NCBI RefSeq assembly: GCF_041956535.1
Contig: NW_027192239.1
Location: 1-46,269, forward strand
Direction of reading: 5' to 3'
Source of the DNA: Calcarisporiella thermophila CBS 279.70
Taxonomy: Eukaryota > Fungi > Calcarisporiellomycota
Length of the DNA: 46,269 bases
Shown here: piece by piece, positions 4,807 through 31,269 of the stretch
How the letters are laid out: every line of letters begins with the position of its first letter
Position numbering within the stretch: the stretch's first letter is position 1
Translations under genes and position numbers: made by a program
The notes under the pieces: generated by a model
The model's database searches: none
Told to the model about the DNA's origin: nothing
The model's input: the letters and a program-made list of their open reading frames with translations, nothing else

Positions 4807-4876
4807 TTATCGGATTGGATGTTATCAGGTGATTCTCATTTTGTGGCTGTACTTTCTTTTTTCGGAGATCAGATAA
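4807..4876. promoter_or_regulatory. Cluster of GATA boxes resembling the SreA/Sre1 iron-repressor site ATCWGATAA
   Basis: Exact ATCAGATAA at 4868-4876; one-mismatch copies on the - strand at 4807-4815 (ATCCGATAA) and 4822-4830 (ACCTGATAA). All lie within about 130 bp of the MFS ATG. Confidence 0.55.
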
Positions 4877-4933: not shown

Positions 4934-6923
4934 ATGATAGCAAAGTCTGCGCAAGATAGCTTTCCACTAGATTCAGAAAATGAAACGGCAAATAGCCTGA
5001 AGGATGTTGAGTTTGGCAACCAAAAAACATATGGCACCGATAGCGATCCGGGCGATGATTTGGTGATTAGATTGGATAGCTCTGAAAGACCGTTATGGAG
5101 ACAGTTTCTAATGAGTTATATTGGGTAATAAAGGGGTTTCTTTTGAGCATGGTGGATATAAATATTTACTTTAGGGAGGTGAATAGATTGTTTCTGTGTA
5201 GTTTTCTTATATATTATGATGGCAATACCGTGGATACTATGCTTCCCAACATCGCGTCACAATTTGATAGTTTGAATATGCTTCAATGGGTTAAAACATC
5301 ATCAGGATTGGTAGTGACAGCTTTTCAACCTCTCTGGGCGCGATTTGCGGATGTTTTTGGACGAAAACCAGTGTTCCTTGGATCGCTACTTATATCGTGC
5401 GTTGGATACGCAATTACTGGAGCTTCTCAAAGCTTTTTAATGTTCATAGTAAAAGATTTTAGTTGCAAAGCATCAAAGATAGAATAATCAATTAGTTTAC
5501 CCATAGGTATGCAACTGCATTATTGAATATGGGCTTAGCGGAATGGCAGTTCTCAACGATATTATCATTGCAGATACAATTCCCTTACGATCGCGGGGTA
5601 AATGGGAGGCATTTTTACTCATTGGGTCGATTACCGCGTCCTTTGTGGGGCCCGTGGTAGCTGGGGCATTGTTAGCAAGTAACTTGTGGCGTTTGCATTT
5701 TTATGTGTATATCGCCTTTATCGTTTTTTTCATAATACCTCTCGTATGGCGAGTAAAGATGCCCAAGGCGAAGGGGTCTCTCATTGAAAAAATTAAAGGG
5801 ATTGATTATATTGGTAACGTCATATTGATTGTGTGCTGCGTTAGCACTATGATTGGATTCAATTGGGCAGGATCCAAGTATGCATGGGATTCACGTATGT
5901 CTTTTACCTTCCAACGGTGTTCAAAAATGATCTTTTGCTAATCATTGAATATTTGTGTAGCACTGATTGTGTCAATGCTCTGCATTGCCTTGGCTAGTCT
6001 TGTGGTGTTTGTATTGTACGAGAAATATTATGCCAAGAACCCTATCATACCTTTGCGTTGTTTTAATATCCGTAACGTGTCTTGCGTTTATCTTATCGAC
6101 ATTGTTTTCAACGCTTCTGCTGGCTATGCATATCTCAATATAGCCTTTTATCAGATTTCGCTAGACCTCTCCCCGGCAACCGCCGGTCTGGTTGCAAATA
6201 CCCCTCACAGCATTGTTGCAACGCTTTCCGCTATTGTCGTGGCGTTCCTAATTCAATACACGGGAAGATATCGGCGATTCATCTTCCTCACTGCAATTTT
6301 TAATGCATCTGGTCTTATTATGCGGTTATTTATAAGTCGTGAAACTTCACTTGCGTTGATATGTGCATCACATGCTGTCAATGCCGGAGGAGTAGGTATG
6401 CTTCACCTATCCTCGATCCTAGCCATTCAATCCTCAGTTGAACATAAAGGTATATCTGCATAAAATTGAAGCATATGCCCAGATGATTTAACGATTTGCA
6501 ATTATAGATATTGCCATTGTCACTACGCTGTACTCCTTTTTCAAATCCCTCAGCAGAACTGTGGGAATATGTTTTATGAGTGCTATATTTAATTCCGTTA
6601 TCTCCAGCAAACTTCGAGCCAATCTTCCAGCGGATGTTGATCACAATATCATCCGGCAAACTCTGCAATCCATCGATAAAATCAAAGCATTAAACCCACC
6701 GATTCGCAATGCAGTTGCCAATTCGTATCTAGAGACAATGCGATTGATGTATTCAATTTCGCTCTGTATGGTTGTGTTTGCTTGCTTTTTCATGATAGGA
6801 TTAAGGCGGTACAAACTAAGTGAGAAAGTGGGAGCAAAACCGGAGCTGGATGAGACGAAAATTGACCGCTTGATAAATAGGTATATTTTTAGGGAAAAAC
6901 CTCAGTCATTACCTAAAAATTAA
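4934..6923 (+). CDS. 14-TMS-type MFS transporter, siderophore-iron transporter (SIT/ARN/Mir)-like or DHA2; 5 exons (about 4934-5124, 5187-5448, 5507-5894, 5961-6449, 6508-6923)
   Basis: MFS motif A ARFADVFGRK; IIIADTIPLRSR resembles the SIT/DHA2 TM4-5 loop; DYIG, WAGSKYAWDS, EKYYAKNPIIP. Four GT..AG introns restore one reading frame. The SIT subfamily call is less certain than the MFS call. Confidence 0.85.
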
Positions 6924-7266
6924 ATTTATCACAGCCTGTGTAGCAATTTGTGTTTATTAATTTTCGCTTTTAAAATTAATAATTAATAATGTTGTATTCT
7001 GAGAATAAACTCATATATATACAGTAAGAGGATTGCGAATGTGGTTATAGATTTAAGGAGTATACCTTTATTTACGAACTTCCATTGGCCTGTTGACTGT
7101 TAATTAAGAAGGAATATTGAGCGGTGTTACTGATAATAAGAGAGGGCAGTTAGTTGGACTTGAATAGCCATTAGAATTAGACAGGGAATTTCTCAAATTT
7201 ATTCAATATTTACTCTTACAACAAGAAGCCAAATCAAACAAAGATATAAGTTATATCGATTGTGGT

Positions 7267-8481
7267 TTAATTATCGGATCGAGCTATGGCAATGAGACCG
7301 TTTGCTAAAGAGCCTTGCCAATTAATAAAATCGTGGCCACCACTGAATATAGAGTACTCCGCTCTATAACCCTTGGATATTAACATGTCGTAGAATCTGC
7401 CTGCGCAGTCCGTCATGTTCATGTTAAGCAATTTCTCCAGCGAACCCACTTCGAAATAATAACGTACGGGCACCGTTTCAGCCTTGCTCATCTCCTCTGT
7501 CAGGCCCTCTTTATTTACCCAGAATGATGCAGACATAGCCACCACATTACCAAACAAATGGGAAGCACGGAATCCGGTAAATACTGCGGCAAGCCCACCA
7601 AAACTCGCGCCACTCACTGTGTTTTGAGAAGGATCGTTTGTGATGCGATAGTGTTCTCGTAGAAAAGGCATAAGTTCCTGAGAGAGAAAATCTACAAAAG
7701 GCTCGTGGCAAGTCAATTCACGGTTCCTAGTCGCCATATTCAGACTATCAAGAAGTACAACAATCTGGGGAGGTATTTTCTTTGCATAGAGCAGATTGTC
7801 AATAATGGTGAAAACTGGTATGCCATGGATAAACATGAAGCCATCGAAGAGAAGCAACATTGGATATTCCTCATTGGTGCTAGGGGAATATTCGGGTGAA
7901 AGGTACACCCACACGCGACGCTCATTACCTAGAATACGACTAGATAAGCGATGCATTTCAAGTCGACCTTTGGGTGCTTCTGGGTTAGGCTGTGACCATG
8001 GTTGAGGCGGAGCATGAGGAAGCGTCAACACCGACATAACCAGATCATTGCTCTCAGGATCTTCTTCATCTTTGCAAAGTTCAAAGCGGTGTGGATTTAA
8101 GGGGTCAGGGGTCAGCAGTTTAAAGTGATCTCTGCTCATCAGTGGAGTTAATGGATGGTCCACCGCGAGTAAATAAGTACAGCGTGTGTCGGATTTCACT
8201 ATGTACGATCGATACCATAGATTAGTAGCCAGCAGCTGCGTCATTTGGTTTTGCTCTGGATTATCACGCCCGGCGGGACCGAAAAAGACCACCACATTTT
8301 TTATTGTAGGCGATGCGGCCTTCCAAATAAACGTGACTAGAAAATGTTCATTGTCGTTTGGGATTGATTCAATCAACGGGGCTCCTTCCTTGGAAACTTG
8401 ATCCCAGAATTCATCTAAAGCAGAGGCGTTTCCTGCGTTTAGAGATTGCTCCAACTGTGAAATGCGCTGACTAGTGTCCAT
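7267..8481 (-). CDS. fes: Enterochelin (ferric enterobactin) esterase-like protein, Fes family (DUF3327 N-domain plus alpha/beta hydrolase), intronless
   Basis: N-domain FW..V..EGAPLIE..LVTFIW; DPLNP; LGNERRVWVY; LLLFDG; RNRELTC; nucleophile GASFGG; EVGSLE; GGHD..W. Single 404-aa ORF. Confidence 0.9.
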   Translation of the reverse strand: MDTSQRISQLEQSLNAGNASALDEFWDQVSKEGAPLIESIPNDNEHFLVTFIWKAASPTIKNVVVFFGPAGRDNPEQNQMTQLLATNLWYRSYIVKSDTRCTYLLAVDHPLTPLMSRDHFKLLTPDPLNPHRFELCKDEEDPESNDLVMSVLTLPHAPPQPWSQPNPEAPKGRLEMHRLSSRILGNERRVWVYLSPEYSPSTNEEYPMLLLFDGFMFIHGIPVFTIIDNLLYAKKIPPQIVVLLDSLNMATRNRELTCHEPFVDFLSQELMPFLREHYRITNDPSQNTVSGASFGGLAAVFTGFRASHLFGNVVAMSASFWVNKEGLTEEMSKAETVPVRYYFEVGSLEKLLNMNMTDCAGRFYDMLISKGYRAEYSIFSGGHDFINWQGSLANGLIAIARSDN

Positions 8482-9972
8482 TTTGGTAATAGTCTAATAT
8501 AGGCACAGGGAAAGGACATAATTTATAGGTTTTTGGCCTAAGTGCTTTCGGGATTCGAATATATCCCCCCTTTAGAGCTTCGTCGAATGATTTCGAGGAT
8601 AAAACTCTGATTTCGGTATGCCTTCCCGTGATGGGGTGAGCGAATGAAAATTATTGACTCAGAAACGAAATAGAACCGGAAAAATTGACTGTGAATTGAG
8701 AATGAATGTGAGGCGGTGCTGTATGTCATAATGCATTAGCAGGAGAGTGAGTAATAGCCGGAGAATAATCAGATCATTCGGAGTGCAGTCTTTAATATCT
8801 TTTCATGAATTTTGGTTGACAGTTTTTCCTCATCTATGACCCGAGTTGCGGAATCGAAGATATTTGATATCAATGCCTTTAGGATTGCGTTAAGTTTCAT
8901 TTGGTATTGCTGAGATCAGTTGAAGGTAGCGGGTATTTTATAAGATAAAAAACCCTTGTGTCGCTTTTTACGGTAAGAAAAAAAAAAGTTTCGGATAAGC
9001 AGCGTGTTCCGCTTTTTCTGATCTTGATAGATCCTTGAAATAGATACTTGCACCTAATTTTGGCAAATTAACTTTGTTCAAAGACTTGGTGTATAAGATT
9101 TTTGCCGTCTTTTTCATTTTCAAACAGTTGAGATGCGAATCTAGCCTCACCGGCAAAGTGATTATTAACTATTGTCAAATCTTATAATGGAGCAAGTGAG
9201 TTAGATTCTATTTATAAGGATGAAAACAGAAGGAGCATGGTTGGATAAGTTGAATGAGTTGGTCATTTGCAATGATAGAAAGAAAAGGAATGAGATATGA
9301 GGGGAAGAGCGCTGAGTAGGATCCCATTGAATTAAGCAAACAACTCTATGATCTTCAATGAATCAGCATCTCTTCCAGTGTTTGAAAATTAAATATATTT
9401 AGCACCCAGTTTAAGGTTTAAATAGATTACCACAAAGATGGATAAGAGTCAGTCCCTCTTTCCTGTTTAACTTGTGCTCATGGTTTAATAACAAGAATAT
9501 ATTGTGGCACTTTTACTCTATTTGAAGATGTGTTAAAAGGTAGGAATGTAAGGAATGTAAAGGTTAATGTAAAACTATAGCAAGAACCAGCATACTACGA
9601 GTTTGGTGTCAGGAAGATGATTCAGGCAAGAATTTTGAACAAGCTGCAACTCAGTACAATAAAGGGTAGAGCTTTTAGGGAAACAGAGAAAGTTGGTAAT
9701 ATATTCAGAATAAAAATTTTTTTTGGTCATTCGTGTCCAGTACAACCAGGTACTACCATCTCTCTACTCTCATATCCCCGCATTGATCATCAGTGCATTT
9801 CAACCTGTCAATTCTGAATCAAGAATAGGAGCTTTACTGGAGCGCATAACCATAAAGGAAGCCAGCAATAGCAAGTATGAGTCTAGACGTATGTACGTAC
9901 GATATTTATTAAAAATTAAAATATAATCATATGAAAGTTTATCTAATATTGTTCATCGCTAATAAGATCTCT

Positions 9973-25619: not shown

Positions 25620-27480
25620 GTTTTTGGGAAAGAGGATGGATGTAGCGACAAAAGAACACAACCGAGCTCCTTTTATATGCATTTTTAAATCAGCCATTGC
25701 GTATGATATATACGGTATATTCCCTACTTGAGTATTTTATACGGCTATATGCATGTATATAAACTAATTCTATATGCTAGCGTAATGGCTTAATCTCGCG
25801 CATCCAAGAAGGGTGCAATAATAAGACTTTGACGCCAAATATTTACTTTGGTCGACCCGCTTTTCAAGCTTCATTTGACAACACAAGCTTTGAGAGTATC
25901 GGCTGGTCAGACATTCCAACCTCTTTCTTAGCATAAGTGCGCAGTTGCCGCGAAATGCGCTGAGGGGGATCTCGAGGCGTTTGCACCCGTCAACGCTACA
26001 ATGAAGAGAAAATCCTGTTATGCACAGCACTAGAGGCGGACGCACCCGGGTGAAGAGGTTGTGCTATTCTAAGAGGATTGCGGCGGCTGACGATGCATGC
26101 TGGGCTGCCTTAGGCCAAACATGGCAGTCTCGGTCCAAGCTAAATTCAGGTTTGTGTCGGGTTCGGAAAAGATCGAGCCGAAGGCTGCATGTGCTGCGCA
26201 ACTGAGTCTTCTTCCCTGGCGCGGTTGCCCAAACAGTGCCAGATGCGAAGTAGAAAAGGCGCAGATCGACATGTTGCTGCTCGCATCCCCCCTAGAAACT
26301 CCGCTCTTCCTGCATAAAAATCCGTGTCGAGAGGCCAATCAAAATGCCTGAGGCGTTTCTGGCCTTCTGAACTGGTTTCCATCCAAAGGGTGCTCCAACC
26401 CCATTCAAGATAGGGGCCACCATTTTCCCATTTTGGCGTCGCAGCTCGAAGTCACGCCTGCGAGAACATTCCTCCGGCAAGTCCCGACTCCAGCCCTCTC
26501 ATCAAAACTTGACGTGCGCTTCTTCACCGGCGCTTTAACTCCGCCGTCAACTATGCGAAATCTCTTTTCTCTTCCGTGGAACTGGATCTCCGCTTCTTTG
26601 GCTCCCAAATGCTCCCGTACTAATCGCTCACGACTCGAGAATAAGGGCTGTGGCCAAGTAGCTTCTCCGTTTCAATCCATATTAAAGCGATCTCCAGGTC
26701 AATGCAATATTGCTCGACCTTGGATGAGGCAATTGGAAAATTATTTTACGGCAATCCACGCTCCAGAACACATCAAAATTCAGTATTCTGTCGCCTTGCT
26801 AAGAGATGAAGCAGCAGTTTGGTGGGAATTCAGAATTACGAAAAATGTGCCACCGGTGAACTGGGAAGAATTTAAAAATGATATCCTATGCCTCTTTGCA
26901 CCAATTAATACAGTAAGACAAGCTAGAGATAAGCTCGCCAACTGTCGCCAAACGAAGAGCGTACAAGAATACTCGCATGAATTCCGGAATATAGTACTAC
27001 AGATTCCAAATTTCACCGAAGAGGAGCTGATCGATAAGTACATTCGAGGACTAAAGCCGCAGACTAGGGGTGAATTAGAATACAGGGAACCTGCAAATTT
27101 CAAAATTTCCGACGAAGCAAGTCGCCTATGACGCACAGAACTCCCATCGTGCACAGGACGCCATCAGAACAACATGACACCGCGACACCAGTGGAACTCG
27201 ACAATATGAAATCCAACAAGAGCAACTTTCCGAAATACAAGAAGGAGGGACGCTGTGTGCGATGCCACGAAATTGGACATATTGGAATTAATTGCACGAA
27301 ATTCCCCGGATCAGCCCCACCGAAATCGAAAAAAGACAATCGTCAATAGAAGCGTCGGTTTCTATTGACATCTCGAACCCGAATATCGAACCCGACAACC
27401 GAGGTAAGAACTACGAACAACGACAATCGAACGAAAATTTTAATATTATTTACGAATCCGATGAACGACTTATAACTACG

Positions 27481-27560
27481 AACTCGAACAACGAACCGAC
27501 ATCGAACAACGAACCAACAACGAACCAACAACGAACCAACAACGAACAACTGACGAACAA
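27481..27560 (+). repeat. Degenerate tandem array of about 11-nt CAACGAACCAA units in the gag-pol linker
   Basis: Read directly. Confidence 0.7.
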
Positions 27561-29056
27561 TTGGTATCAACAATTACGACATCGATTAACAAAGAAGAAA
27601 CACCGAAAAAATCACTCGAAAGAACCGAACCTCGAAAAGTATGGGAATATGAAGGATAATTGGAAAACCGACCATCAAGATTTTTAATCCACGGAGGTGC
27701 CGAAAACAATTTTATTTCCTATCAATACTTGGAAAAGAACAACCTTTTATCGTATCTTCAAGCCGACAACTTGCGCATCGTGAAATTGGGACACGGATCA
27801 ACCAAACCATGTTATGGATTTACGACAGTTTCAATTGACGAGTACAACGACGAAATATCCTTCGATGTTGTTGATTTGAATAATGCACATGACGCTACTC
27901 TTGGATTATCTTGGCTACACACGACAAAAGCACTTTTCGATTGGGATCACCGCATATTACGAGTAATACGACAGAACGAAATTTTACAACTCCGTGAAAT
28001 GTCCGGTTCAACTCCAGCTGTAGGAAACGTGCCAATTCAAGAAATAATGAATAGTTTCGAATCAGCAGGACCTTCAGACCTTTTTGCAATCCTTTCATTC
28101 GACACCAACGCATCCGGCCAGACTACACTCGAGGAATTTCAAGATAAAGAACTTAATGACCTATTGACAGAATTCGCTGGCGTTTTTCCCGATGATCCTC
28201 CTAGTGGACTTCCATCCGAGAGTCACATAGTACACACCATTCCATTGAAAGAAGGCGCGACTCCTCCAGCACCTCGTGTATACCGCATGTCCAACAAAGA
28301 ACTAATAGAATTCTCAAAGCAATTGCAAGACCTCCTCGACAAAGGCTGGATCTGACCCTCATCCTCGCCTTATGGTGCTTCAGTCCTATTCGTACACAAT
28401 AAAGACGGGTCGCTCAGACTTTGCATTGGCTACCGACAACTTAACGCGATTATGATAAAAAACCGATATGCACTTCCTCGTACCGATGACCCTAATTGAT
28501 CAACTACACGGTGCTTCATTTTTTTCAAAAACCGACCTCCGTTCCGGCTATCATCAGATCCGTGTCGCTGATGAAGATGTTCATAAGACCGCTTTTCGCA
28601 CAAGATATGGACATTTCGAATTTCGAGTACTTCCGCTTGGCTTAACCTCCGCACCGGCCACTTTTATGAACCTAATGAACGAGCATTTCTGCGATTACCT
28701 TGATGATTTCGTTATTGTGCTCCTCGATGACATCCTAATTTATTCACATAACCGAGAAGAGCATTTGCGACACATCCGATTGGTTCTCGACAGACTTCGC
28801 GAGAAAAACTTATTCGCCAAGTGCGAATTTATGAAAACAGAAATCAAATTCCTGAGTCACATCGCTTCCGCCGAAGGACTTAAGGTAGAACCACACAAGA
28901 TCGATACGGTTAAAAACTGGCCCACTCCTAAGAATATTCGCGACGTTCAATGCTTCCTGGGATTAGCTAATTACTATCGCCGATTTATCCTTCGTTTTTC
29001 TCACATCGCGGCACCACTGAATCGTTGTTTATCGACTAAACAAGAATGGACCTGGA

Positions 29057-29263
29057 TGTAATAAACACAAGTAGGGTTCGACATATACTAATGTTTATTA
29101 CACTAAAATAAGTTTGTAAAAAGACGTAAAGTCGATTCGTAAAAATTCAGTTAAAGATTCGATCAAGGCGTAATTAAGTTCTACAAGTGATTTTATACGT
29201 AAAGTAAAAATATCCGAGATCGATTGTCGATAAATTAAATATATATTAGTTACCGTACTTGTT
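29057..29263 (-). repeat. LTR copy A (minus orientation), preceded on - by PPT-like AAGGGCGGG (29281-29273)
   Basis: Reverse complement matches 31273-31478 over 206 bp by manual comparison; ends TTACA. Confidence 0.92.
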
Positions 29264-31269
29264 TCTTGTTAACCCGCCCTTAAGCTTTATCGGTCTTGTT
29301 ATTTTTCTCGTATTTCCTGATTATATCTTGAGCTCTAGTCATGCCTTTCGCTGGTTCTCAAGTGTTTTATTGGTCATCGTAGCCTTTCCATTTAACTAAG
29401 TACTCTTTGCGATTGTACCATCTTCGCTCGTCGAGGATTTTTCGACTTCGTACTCTGTTTCTCCATCAACGATTATGGGTGGAGGTGGTGGCGCATTGCG
29501 ATCGTCTGTGGCTTGTTCGTATTTCTTAAGAACGGAAACATGAAATACTGGGTGCGTTCTGACATTCGTTGGCAGCTCTAGTTTGTACGCAACTTTTCCA
29601 ATTCGACTGAGAACCTTGAATGGTCCCGCAAACCGTGGTGATAATTTCTTCGAAGGGGCGTTGCAATACACTTCTGGTTTCAAGTGTGTGGTTCTTATCA
29701 TGACTTGATCATTTTCTTGGAATTCTACATCGGATCGTTGTTGGTCAGCGTATTCTCGTTGTCGCTCTTGTGCATCCTTGATCATTTGTATGATAGTCGA
29801 TAGGGTTTTTTTGAGTTGTTCGGTAAGTTCTTCTGCGGTAGGATTTTCTATCGTGGCTCGGGTCATGTTGGGGTTTCGTAGTGTTCGTCCTAGGTCGGCT
29901 ATAAAAGGTGTAGTTCTGGTGGAAATGTGCATCGAATCGTTATACGCGAATTCAACAAAGGGCAAGAGGTCGTCCCAATTATCCTGTTTATATGCCGTGT
30001 AGTGTCGTAACATGTCTTCGAGGGTTCTATTCATGCGTCCTGTTTGTCCGCTCGTCTGTGGGTGGTAAGCCGAGGAAAGTTTGGTCTTTATACCGAGTTT
30101 CTGTGTTATAGTCTACCAAAACTTCGATGTAAATTTCGGTTCGCGATCGCTAATAATACTGGTTGGCATGCCGTGTTGTCTAAAGATCTCTAGAAAAAAA
30201 TGTATGGGCTGTATCTACTGCATTGTCGGTTGTCTTGCTGGGGGCGAAGTGAGCTCTCTTGGTGAATCTGTCGACATAAACTGTTATCACATCGAATCCT
30301 CTTTTTGTCTTCGGTAGTTGAACAATAAATCCATCGAAATCAAGTCCCATCTTGTAGTTGGAATTTCTAATGGCTGCGATAGTCCTGCTGGCTTCTTATT
30401 CGTTGATTTCACTCGTTGACATGAATCACACGCCTTAATATATCGTCGTACTGTCTTTTGCATATTTGGCCAATAGTAGTCGCGTTGAACTCATTCCAGT
30501 GTATTGTCGATTCCCATATGTCCAGCGTAAATCGCATCATGAGCATTGAACATTATTTTGTTGTTTAAGAGTTGGTCTGAGGAGCACATAATCGGCGTTG
30601 GTCATCAATCGCTTGTACAATAGTCCATTTTCTAGTTCGTAATCGTCGTGCTTGGCGAGGTTTTCGATTATTTGGCACCATTGGTCTTTCATCAAGAGTT
30701 TTCGTATATGATCCTGTATCTCCTCCATTCCTAAAATCAAATACATCGTTAAAAGTTCGCTAGACGTTATCGGTGGTTCTGTGGTCTCCGGTAGAATATC
30801 ATCGAGATGAGGTCACTTCGAAAGGGCGTCGGCGGCTGTGTTTTTCTCTCGTGGAATATGGTAGATGTTAAATTCAAACGCTTGAAATTGTTGCAGCCAT
30901 CGAATTTGTCGTTTAGAAAAATTCGTGTTGGTCTTGAGCGTTGCTAGTGATCGGTTGTCGGTGTAAACGTTAAAAGGTTGGTCATCCAAATAGTGTCTCC
31001 ATTTCGTAAGGCAATGAATAAACTCCAAGAGTTCTTGTTCGTGTACAGGATAGCTCTTTTCGGCTGGCGATAGCTGTCTCGATTCATATGCAACAGGATG
31101 AAGCTGATTATCGTCGGAAAGTTGACAAAGAATACCGACCAGAGCGTTAGTACTTGCTGCATCGAAAAATATGTGGTACGGTTTATCTTGATCTGACAAG
31201 GTGAGAACAGGTGCGGATGCTAGGGCTGTTTTGAGCGTATCGAATACCGTTTGTTCTAGTTTCGTCCAG

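Follow-up and report, generated by a model that had tools for sequence, protein, structure and literature searches.

We analysed the 46,269-nt contig NW_027192239.1 (contig C49, hereafter the window), one of 116 contigs in the 28.2-Mb genome of the thermophilic, early-diverging fungus Calcarisporiella thermophila CBS 279.70, on which a gene for a Fes-family (enterochelin esterase-type) protein and a gene for a major facilitator superfamily (MFS) transporter converge. We propose that the esterase was acquired from bacteria and hydrolyses siderophore esters in the cytosol, and that its MFS neighbour is a divergent 14-spanner of the DHA2-ARN-GEX (DAG) family that is possibly coupled to it; we assign this combined reading a probability of roughly 0.5. 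Its solid part, judged by sequence comparison, is the well-supported conclusion that one gene, for a Fes-like esterase, was transferred long ago and now lies beside an orphan transporter. The arrangement described in a first-pass annotation of this DNA, a four-intron MFS gene and an intronless Fes-family gene lying tail to tail about 340 bp apart, was confirmed: the coordinates match, the stop codons occupy positions 6921-6923 (MFS) and 7267-7269 (Fes), and the gap between them measures 343 bp (Table 1).

Domain, motif and fold comparisons support the assignment of the predicted esterase to the bacterial-type Fes family and indicate that it is intact. PF11806 (Enterochelin_N, 1.3e-12) covers residues 49-162 and PF00756 (Esterase, 7.8e-24) residues 181-398. 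In phmmer searches the protein matched the Fes structure of Shigella (8e-32) and Fes of Salmonella (1e-28), with the serine of the GxSxG motif, the Glu and the histidine of the GGHD motif aligned; in the fungal protein the first motif reads G291-A-S293-F-G295, and the acidic residue E349 and histidine H383 align to the Fes motifs. Across 28 aligned sequences (the query and 27 homologues) 37 columns are invariant, including those of E349 and H383, and the nucleophile Ser293 is nearly invariant (≥90%). The AlphaFold model of the esterase has a pLDDT of 94.3, and its top 11 matches in the PDB are all Fes chains, superimposed over both domains with TM-scores of 0.69-0.77 and E values of ~1e-30. 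They are followed by CBM48-CE1 feruloyl/xylan esterases (0.53-0.56) and then by single-domain BesA/IroE-like proteins. The nearest ESM Atlas cluster, dominated by Chloroflexota and with the Enterochelin_N/Esterase architecture, superimposes with a TM-score of 0.93. The intact open reading frame and the retention of family-invariant residues on a long branch argue for selection.

Horizontal acquisition of this gene from bacteria, as an old event involving a single gene, is highly probable on the comparative evidence. Among 5.8 billion proteins searched, 390 were homologous, with 46-54% identity for the best; of the top 120 of these 390, all proteins with a named organism are bacterial or archaeal, the archaeal ones coming from metagenome-assembled genomes (MAGs). 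Prominent among the same 120 are Ktedonobacteria (Ktedonobacter, Reticulibacter, Dictyobacter, Ktedonospora and Ktedonosporobacter), followed by Micromonospora and Streptomyces. The fungal Fes occupies a long branch (1.01) within the prokaryotic radiation of a 112-row tree, without a well-supported sister, and the two close homologues whose contigs were read (P0003 and P0004) have bacterial gene surroundings. The gene is single-copy in the 28.2-Mb genome; its GC content of 45.5%, and of 44% at third codon positions (GC3), falls within the range of 42-53% of neighbouring fungal genes. We consider the transfer to be old because the gene is intronless with prokaryote-only relatives, is set among intron-bearing fungal genes and has a host-like composition. 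An ancestor of C. thermophila would have acquired fes from a bacterium, most likely a Ktedonobacteria-like member of the Chloroflexota or a related soil or compost species, the donor lineage being identified just approximately, and the transferred gene would later have drifted to the base composition of its host. The acquired bacterial origin that the first-pass annotation had proposed for the release enzyme is thus upheld by the prokaryotic homologues, the tree and the linkage to host genes. Neither C. thermophila nor fes appears in two published surveys that covered gene transfer into fungi (PMC11291939, PMC11708051).

Contamination or a chimeric assembly, in which fes would lie outside the fungal genome, could also yield an intronless gene whose organism-named relatives are exclusively prokaryotic, yet we regard this explanation as extremely improbable. 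Within the 46-kb contig, intron-bearing fungal genes lie to either side of fes, and the gene content of the contig is fungal: a subtilase, a Fungal_trans transcription-factor domain, a class-3 lipase, a glutathione S-transferase and a MIOX exon, together with gag, reverse transcriptase and integrase fragments of Ty3/gypsy elements. The immediate flanks of fes are AT-rich and match the remainder of the contig, which averages 38% GC; GC and GC3 of the gene itself fit the host genes, and its identity to any bacterium among the matches listed does not exceed 54%. Co-transfer of the MFS gene together with fes was also considered and rejected: the MFS gene contains four introns and its product clusters with proteins of fungi; in the five bacterial fes neighbourhoods inspected, no MFS gene lies next to the esterase gene.

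The N-terminus of the esterase is hydrophilic (maximum Kyte-Doolittle value -0.19) and contains no hydrophobic segment, so that a signal peptide is not apparent; the enzyme is therefore expected to be intracellular, and is probably cytosolic like bacterial Fes. After uptake, it would hydrolyse ester-linked (trilactone or oligoester) catecholate siderophores in the cytosol and thereby free the iron. We lean, by a little, towards a siderophore as the substrate. The homologue of a Micromonospora sp. lies directly downstream of a large nonribosomal peptide synthetase (NRPS) gene with an MbtH gene nearby, and that of Ktedonobacter racemifer is divergent from two ABC half-transporters (ABC_membrane+ABC_tran) of the type found in siderophore traffic; both contexts fit a siderophore role for the family. 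Domain searches found no siderophore synthetase in the window, in agreement with the earlier claim.

The MFS gene is interrupted by introns of 50, 58, 66 and 58 nt, all of them GT..AG and consistent in phase. Its exons were searched singly, and the partial public model P0121 (VTP21DRAFT_9078, 418 aa) was the query wherever longer sequence was needed. Exons 2, 3 and 4 each match Pfam MFS_1; exon 1 has no Pfam match of its own, and its end (FLMSYIG) resembles the corresponding part of P0122 from Spizellomyces. In P0121, the exon 3/4 and 4/5 junctions are identical to those of the present model. Its start is an internal Met of exon 3 (position 5543), so that exons 1 and 2 are missing, together about 167 residues including the transmembrane segments TM1-TM3. 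The public model looks truncated because exon 2 has a clear MFS_1 match and shows 37% identity to the N-terminal regions of P0122, P0150 and P0124, all three of them full-length relatives.

By sequence, the transporter is a very divergent fungal 14-spanner of the DAG superfamily that falls between a DHA2 clade and a clade resembling siderophore iron transporters (SITs). The alignment of P0121 with the DHA2 model TIGR00711 (485 positions) covers model positions 109-471, and all relatives of the protein are of 14-spanner types; the partial protein reaches 68.7 bits, where the cut-off is 230.2, typical DHA2-like fungal and bacterial proteins score 173-204 bits and those of the SIT-like clade 43-53 bits. 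An exhaustive phmmer search of 1.84 billion representatives with exon 4 returned just two proteins below 1e-10, one of which is P0121 itself; the best foreign match is SPPG_08254 of Spizellomyces (30% identity), and no relative exceeds ~30%. The closest paralogues within the C. thermophila genome are 28-33% identical. In word-index searches, P0121 retrieved, at 25-28% identity, proteins of Coemansia and numerous EmrB/QacA proteins of bacteria; with the SIT-like paralogue P0124 as well as with P0121, the matches were mainly of this bacterial kind and few were named fungal proteins, and the names obtained for clusters were mostly 'hypothetical' or 'MFS'. The neighbours of the transporter in the Atlas bear TRI12 and MFS_1, and no solved structure matches it.

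Two MFS trees were calculated, a 117-row FastTree and a 57-row quick tree using IQ-TREE with the posterior mean site frequency (PMSF) model. Both contain (i) a SIT-like clade of 17 rows, (ii) a DHA2 clade with 37 rows from fungi and bacteria and (iii) three unresolved rows in between, namely the query, SPPG_08254 and the paralogue VTP21DRAFT_10839. The SIT-like clade comprises Candida glutathione exchanger 1, an Elsinoe siderophore-dependent/siderochrome iron transporter cluster, Saitoella, Puccinia and chytrid proteins and VTP21DRAFT_1679; its SIT label derives from one GEX1-named protein and one siderophore-transporter-named cluster, with names from automatic annotation. The query lies outside the 14-row SIT crown in both trees, and in the quick tree it is also excluded from the DHA2 clade of 37 (99 SH-aLRT). 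Constrained trees were compared by the approximately unbiased (AU) test under LG+F+G4, a model more prone to long-branch artefacts: placement of the query inside the 14-row SIT crown was rejected (delta lnL 57, p=0.015), whereas neither its union with the 17 SIT-like rows (p=0.59) nor its union with the DHA2 clade (p=0.50) was. Averaged over the top five matches, exons 2 and 3 score 63.6 and 71.2 bits with DHA2-type proteins versus 45.2 and 51.3 bits with SIT-like ones; exons 4 and 5 show no preference.

These placements do not support the neighbour as a SIT importer. The first-pass annotation had described a SIT-like transporter and native siderophore importer, a description not supported by the rejected crown placement or by the N-terminal exons, which favour DHA2. 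It had also named grouping with drug-efflux DHA2 clades as evidence against import, and this was found in part: the SIT crown is excluded, and sister positions to the SIT-like rows and to DHA2 are both compatible with the AU test. The nearest foreign relative, SPPG_08254 of Spizellomyces punctatus (KQ257469.1, 169512-187811), shares its locus with genes for a cytochrome P450, another TRI12-type MFS and a DIT1/PvcA-MFS fusion; the locus resembles a secondary-metabolite cluster of the isocyanide or dityrosine type that includes exporters. Elsewhere in the genome, VTP21DRAFT_1679 (P0124, 580 aa, three exons; C12:389706-391635) takes the sister position to the crown SIT-like clade in each of the two trees and is the best candidate of this genome for a genuine SIT; a one-mismatch GATA site (ATCTGATAT), the sole site type there, lies ~450 bp upstream of it.

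The MFS promoter contains a cluster of GATA sites that resemble the SreA consensus ATCWGATAA (PMC5932178, PMC10500206). Two of its three sites, ATCCGATAA and ACCTGATAA, carry one mismatch each and the third, ATCAGATAA, is exact (Table 1). Exact ATCWGATAA occurs 587 times genome-wide versus 419 times for a reversed control, or about once per 48 kb, and 42 kb scanned at other loci contain ~6e-4 sites per bp with at most one mismatch; by these rates, three sites in 70 bp are well beyond chance. Across the window, exact sites are not enriched (2 found versus 2.04 expected), and the local cluster in the MFS promoter alone stands out. The second exact site, ATCTGATAA, lies within the coding sequence of MFS exon 4, where it probably occurs by chance. 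A SreA-type dual-finger GATA gene (C3:1232436-1232828) carries a C-x5-C-x8-C-x2-C box between its fingers (CPGDGHCNGTGGSKSCEGC), which we take to be the hallmark of SreA/Fep1-type iron repressors; this box is not present in three further dual-finger GATA genes (C3:613191, C7:786804 and C7:280144). Iron or a GATA factor may regulate the MFS gene. Because all three candidate sites also satisfy the generic HGATAR motif, they could be bound by a different GATA factor as well; iron specificity is a point that we infer.

Functional coupling between fes and the MFS gene is possible: the transporter might import the siderophore or export its breakdown products. The genome holds at least ~19 DAG-type MFS loci in 28 Mb, from which we roughly estimate that such a locus would lie within 1 kb of a given gene by chance in a few cases per thousand. 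The adjacency is suggestive, and it was evaluated post hoc; a transposon-rich region may simply gather lineage-specific genes.

In its fullest form, the coupling would be that envisaged in the first-pass annotation, in which the MFS protein imports ferric enterobactin/bacillibactin-type siderophores and Fes frees their iron in the cytosol, both genes being co-selected and co-regulated. The genes are immediate neighbours at a distance seldom expected by chance, both proteins are lineage-specific and on long branches, and the dense cluster of SreA-type sites in the MFS promoter is matched by a SreA-type regulator in the genome; furthermore, Fes, if cytosolic as predicted, would need an importer, and a clade of the transporter with the SIT-like group was not rejected. 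Nevertheless, we judge this full form unlikely. The transporter lies outside the SIT crown and joins DHA2 equally well, its second and third exons score higher with DHA2-type proteins, its Spizellomyces relative resides in an exporter-type cluster, and P0124 is a better SIT candidate elsewhere in the genome. The two genes have no common promoter because they converge, and fes has no convincing GATA site of its own.

Several observations also weigh against our own proposal of a siderophore-hydrolysing Fes with a possibly coupled DAG transporter. The NCBIfam enterochelin-esterase equivalog NF007758 matches residues 9-400 of 404 with 213.8 bits and narrowly misses its cut-off of 222, identity to characterised Fes is just 24-27%, and the CBM48-CE1 feruloyl/xylan esterases have the same architecture. 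Three of the five bacterial contexts (Reticulibacter and two metagenomic/MAG contigs) contain no adjacent iron-related genes. For the transporter, the setting of its nearest foreign relative suggests, by analogy, a role as an exporter. Upstream of fes, just one-mismatch sites without a GATAA core were found and no convincing SreA-type site; the GATA box previously noted there (8766-8774) is of this kind and was not counted.

Some of these points would be explained if the two genes were unrelated neighbours, the Fes-like enzyme acting on a non-siderophore ester (of the plant cell wall or another metabolite) or being a functionless relic, and the MFS protein being a DHA2-like efflux pump under a GATA factor, for example for nitrogen control. 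The missed equivalog cut-off, the position of CE1 feruloyl esterases with an N-terminal beta-domain as next-best structural matches, and the three of five bacterial contexts without siderophore genes are in line with this explanation, as are the 'enterochelin esterase-like' genes transferred into Pyrenophora, which are predicted to be extracellular and whose role is unknown (PMC3612039). The fit of all three promoter sites to generic HGATAR points in the same direction, as does the abundance of transposons in the window, a trait to which accessory regions tend. Against it stand the Fes structures, which are clearly the best full-length matches by TM-score, the lack of a signal peptide, contrary to a secreted cell-wall esterase, the intact reading frame with all family-invariant residues kept on a long branch, indicative of selection, and the NRPS with MbtH or ABC transporters that adjoin some homologues. 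On balance, we find unrelated neighbours rather doubtful and prefer an acquired, cytosolic, siderophore-cleaving Fes beside a DAG transporter with which it is possibly coupled.

A more specific variant assembles a catecholate-xenosiderophore unit from mixed parts: Fes would have been captured from Ktedonobacteria-like neighbours in hot compost or coal spoil and combined with a non-SIT DAG importer under SreA-type control, so that siderophore import would have arisen independently beyond the SIT clade. We consider this variant improbable.

Table 1 Features of the window around the convergent esterase and MFS genes, with the retroelement fragments of the same contig
Feature	Position	Strand	Description
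GATA cluster, three sites	4807..4876		58-127 bp upstream of MFS start codon; motif scan
GATA site ATCCGATAA	4807	-	one mismatch
GATA site ACCTGATAA	4822	-	one mismatch
GATA site ATCAGATAA	4868-4876		exact ATCWGATAA, 58 bp upstream of MFS ATG
MFS gene, whole	4934-6923	+	five exons, four introns
MFS exon 1	4934-5124	+	ATG-initiated open reading frame, GT donor at 5125; hydrophilic N-terminus and start of TM1
MFS exon 2	5175-5448	+	TM1-TM3, FGRKP motif; MFS_1 at 1.6e-14
MFS exon 3	5507-5894	+	TM4 to ~TM7; MFS_1 at 1.4e-7; holds the start of P0121
MFS exon 4	5961-6449	+	P0121 residues 119-280, 100% identity; best foreign match 30%
Second exact site ATCTGATAA	6148-6156	-	within MFS exon 4
MFS exon 5	6508-6923	+	includes TAA stop; identical to C-terminus of P0121
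Spacer between convergent stop codons (shared 3' region)	6924..7266		AT-rich, 343 bp; sequence read
Fes-family (enterochelin esterase-type) gene	7267..8481	-	uninterrupted open reading frame, 404 aa, intronless
Ty3/gypsy gag	26433-27131	+	
Ty3/gypsy reverse transcriptase	28468-29061	+	
Ty3/gypsy integrase SH3 domain	29396-30034	-	

Further along the window, the occurrence of Ty3/gypsy fragments on both strands indicates that the retroelement at 26433-30034 is rearranged or nested. Outside the window, the genome contains three IucA/IucC genes of the NRPS-independent siderophore (NIS), rhizoferrin-synthetase-like type (C18:174684-176539, C19:431930 and C4:1131815). For the C18 copy, an exact ATCTGATAA is found on the upstream side, ~1.2 kb past the domain match, a distance counted from that match and not from the gene start. 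A single FTR1 iron-permease gene with several introns (C20:605065-606191) has a one-mismatch site (AACTGATAA) ~180 bp upstream.

Pairs of importer and esterase are already known in fungi (MirA/EstA, MirB/EstB), and the present pair is at most novel as a variant. What the locus appears to add is a Fes-type two-domain esterase of bacterial origin, predicted to be cytosolic, in an early-diverging fungus and beside a non-canonical transporter. Mucoromycota-grade fungi make rhizoferrin, a weak carboxylate, as their own siderophore. If the esterase does cleave bacterial catecholate siderophores, it would be the first two-domain Fes-type siderophore esterase working in a fungus, and a lineage of this grade would clearly have gained, by transfer, the step in the use of xenosiderophores that releases the iron. 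If the MFS protein is indeed an importer, fungal siderophore import would not be confined to the SIT clade.

Among solved structures, the enterobacterial Fes proteins of E. coli, Shigella and Salmonella (PDB 2B20, 3C87 and 3MGA) are the best match in both sequence and fold. They share with the C. thermophila enzyme the two domains, Enterochelin_N and alpha/beta-hydrolase, as well as the aligned GxSxG serine, Glu and GGHD histidine and the lack of a signal peptide. The fungal enzyme differs from them in its low identity, given above, in its membership of a subclade rich in Ktedonobacteria and actinomycetes whose siderophore substrate is a candidate one, and in being encoded by a eukaryote.

Fungi import enterobactin by SITs (Enb1/Arn4, MirA), and dedicated intracellular esterases hydrolyse the imported siderophores (PMC10500206). 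In A. nidulans, these functions are provided by the enterobactin SIT MirA and the enterobactin esterase EstA (PMC10500206), and in A. fumigatus the MirB-SidG-EstB cluster combines transporter, acetyltransferase and esterase under regulation by SreA (PMC2610380). MirA/EstA and MirB/EstB follow the same logic of an MFS importer and an intracellular iron-releasing esterase, including for a bacterial catecholate. The idea of an importer with an intracellular esterase for bacterial enterobactin, as put forward in the first-pass annotation, thus has a known precedent in MirA/EstA, but its identification of the present MFS protein as a SIT is not supported. Unlike the two-domain C. thermophila enzyme, the esterases of Aspergillus have a single domain and are IroE-like or other alpha/beta hydrolases; in sequence comparison C. 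thermophila Fes has a marginal match to EstB (E 0.0085-0.78) and none to EstA or SidJ. The Aspergillus transporters are true SITs, whereas the C. thermophila MFS protein lies outside the SIT crown.

Enb1/Arn4 of S. cerevisiae is likewise a 14-spanner of the DHA2/ARN/GEX MFS type and imports enterobactin (PMC10500206, PMC3890622). Enb1 is a crown member of the ARN/SIT group, whereas the C. thermophila MFS protein is excluded from the crown that holds GEX- and SIT-named references, in a tree built without curated Enb1. GEX and ARN are sister subfamilies inside the DAG family (PMC3890622). With the 14-spanners of this family, the C. thermophila protein aligns end to end, on the branch that joins the DHA2 and the ARN/GEX-like clades; unlike the members of the named subfamilies, it falls into none of them and is at most ~30% identical to any member.

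A precedent for movement of COG2382-type esterases from bacteria to fungi is provided by Pyrenophora and other Dothideomycetes, into which bacterial 'enterochelin esterase-like' genes were transferred (PMC3612039). These proteins are predicted to be secreted and have no transporter partner, and their top donor-side match is Mesotoga; the C. thermophila transfer is set apart from them by this description as a separate event, one in which a Fes-type esterase predicted to be cytosolic came to lie next to a fungal transporter.

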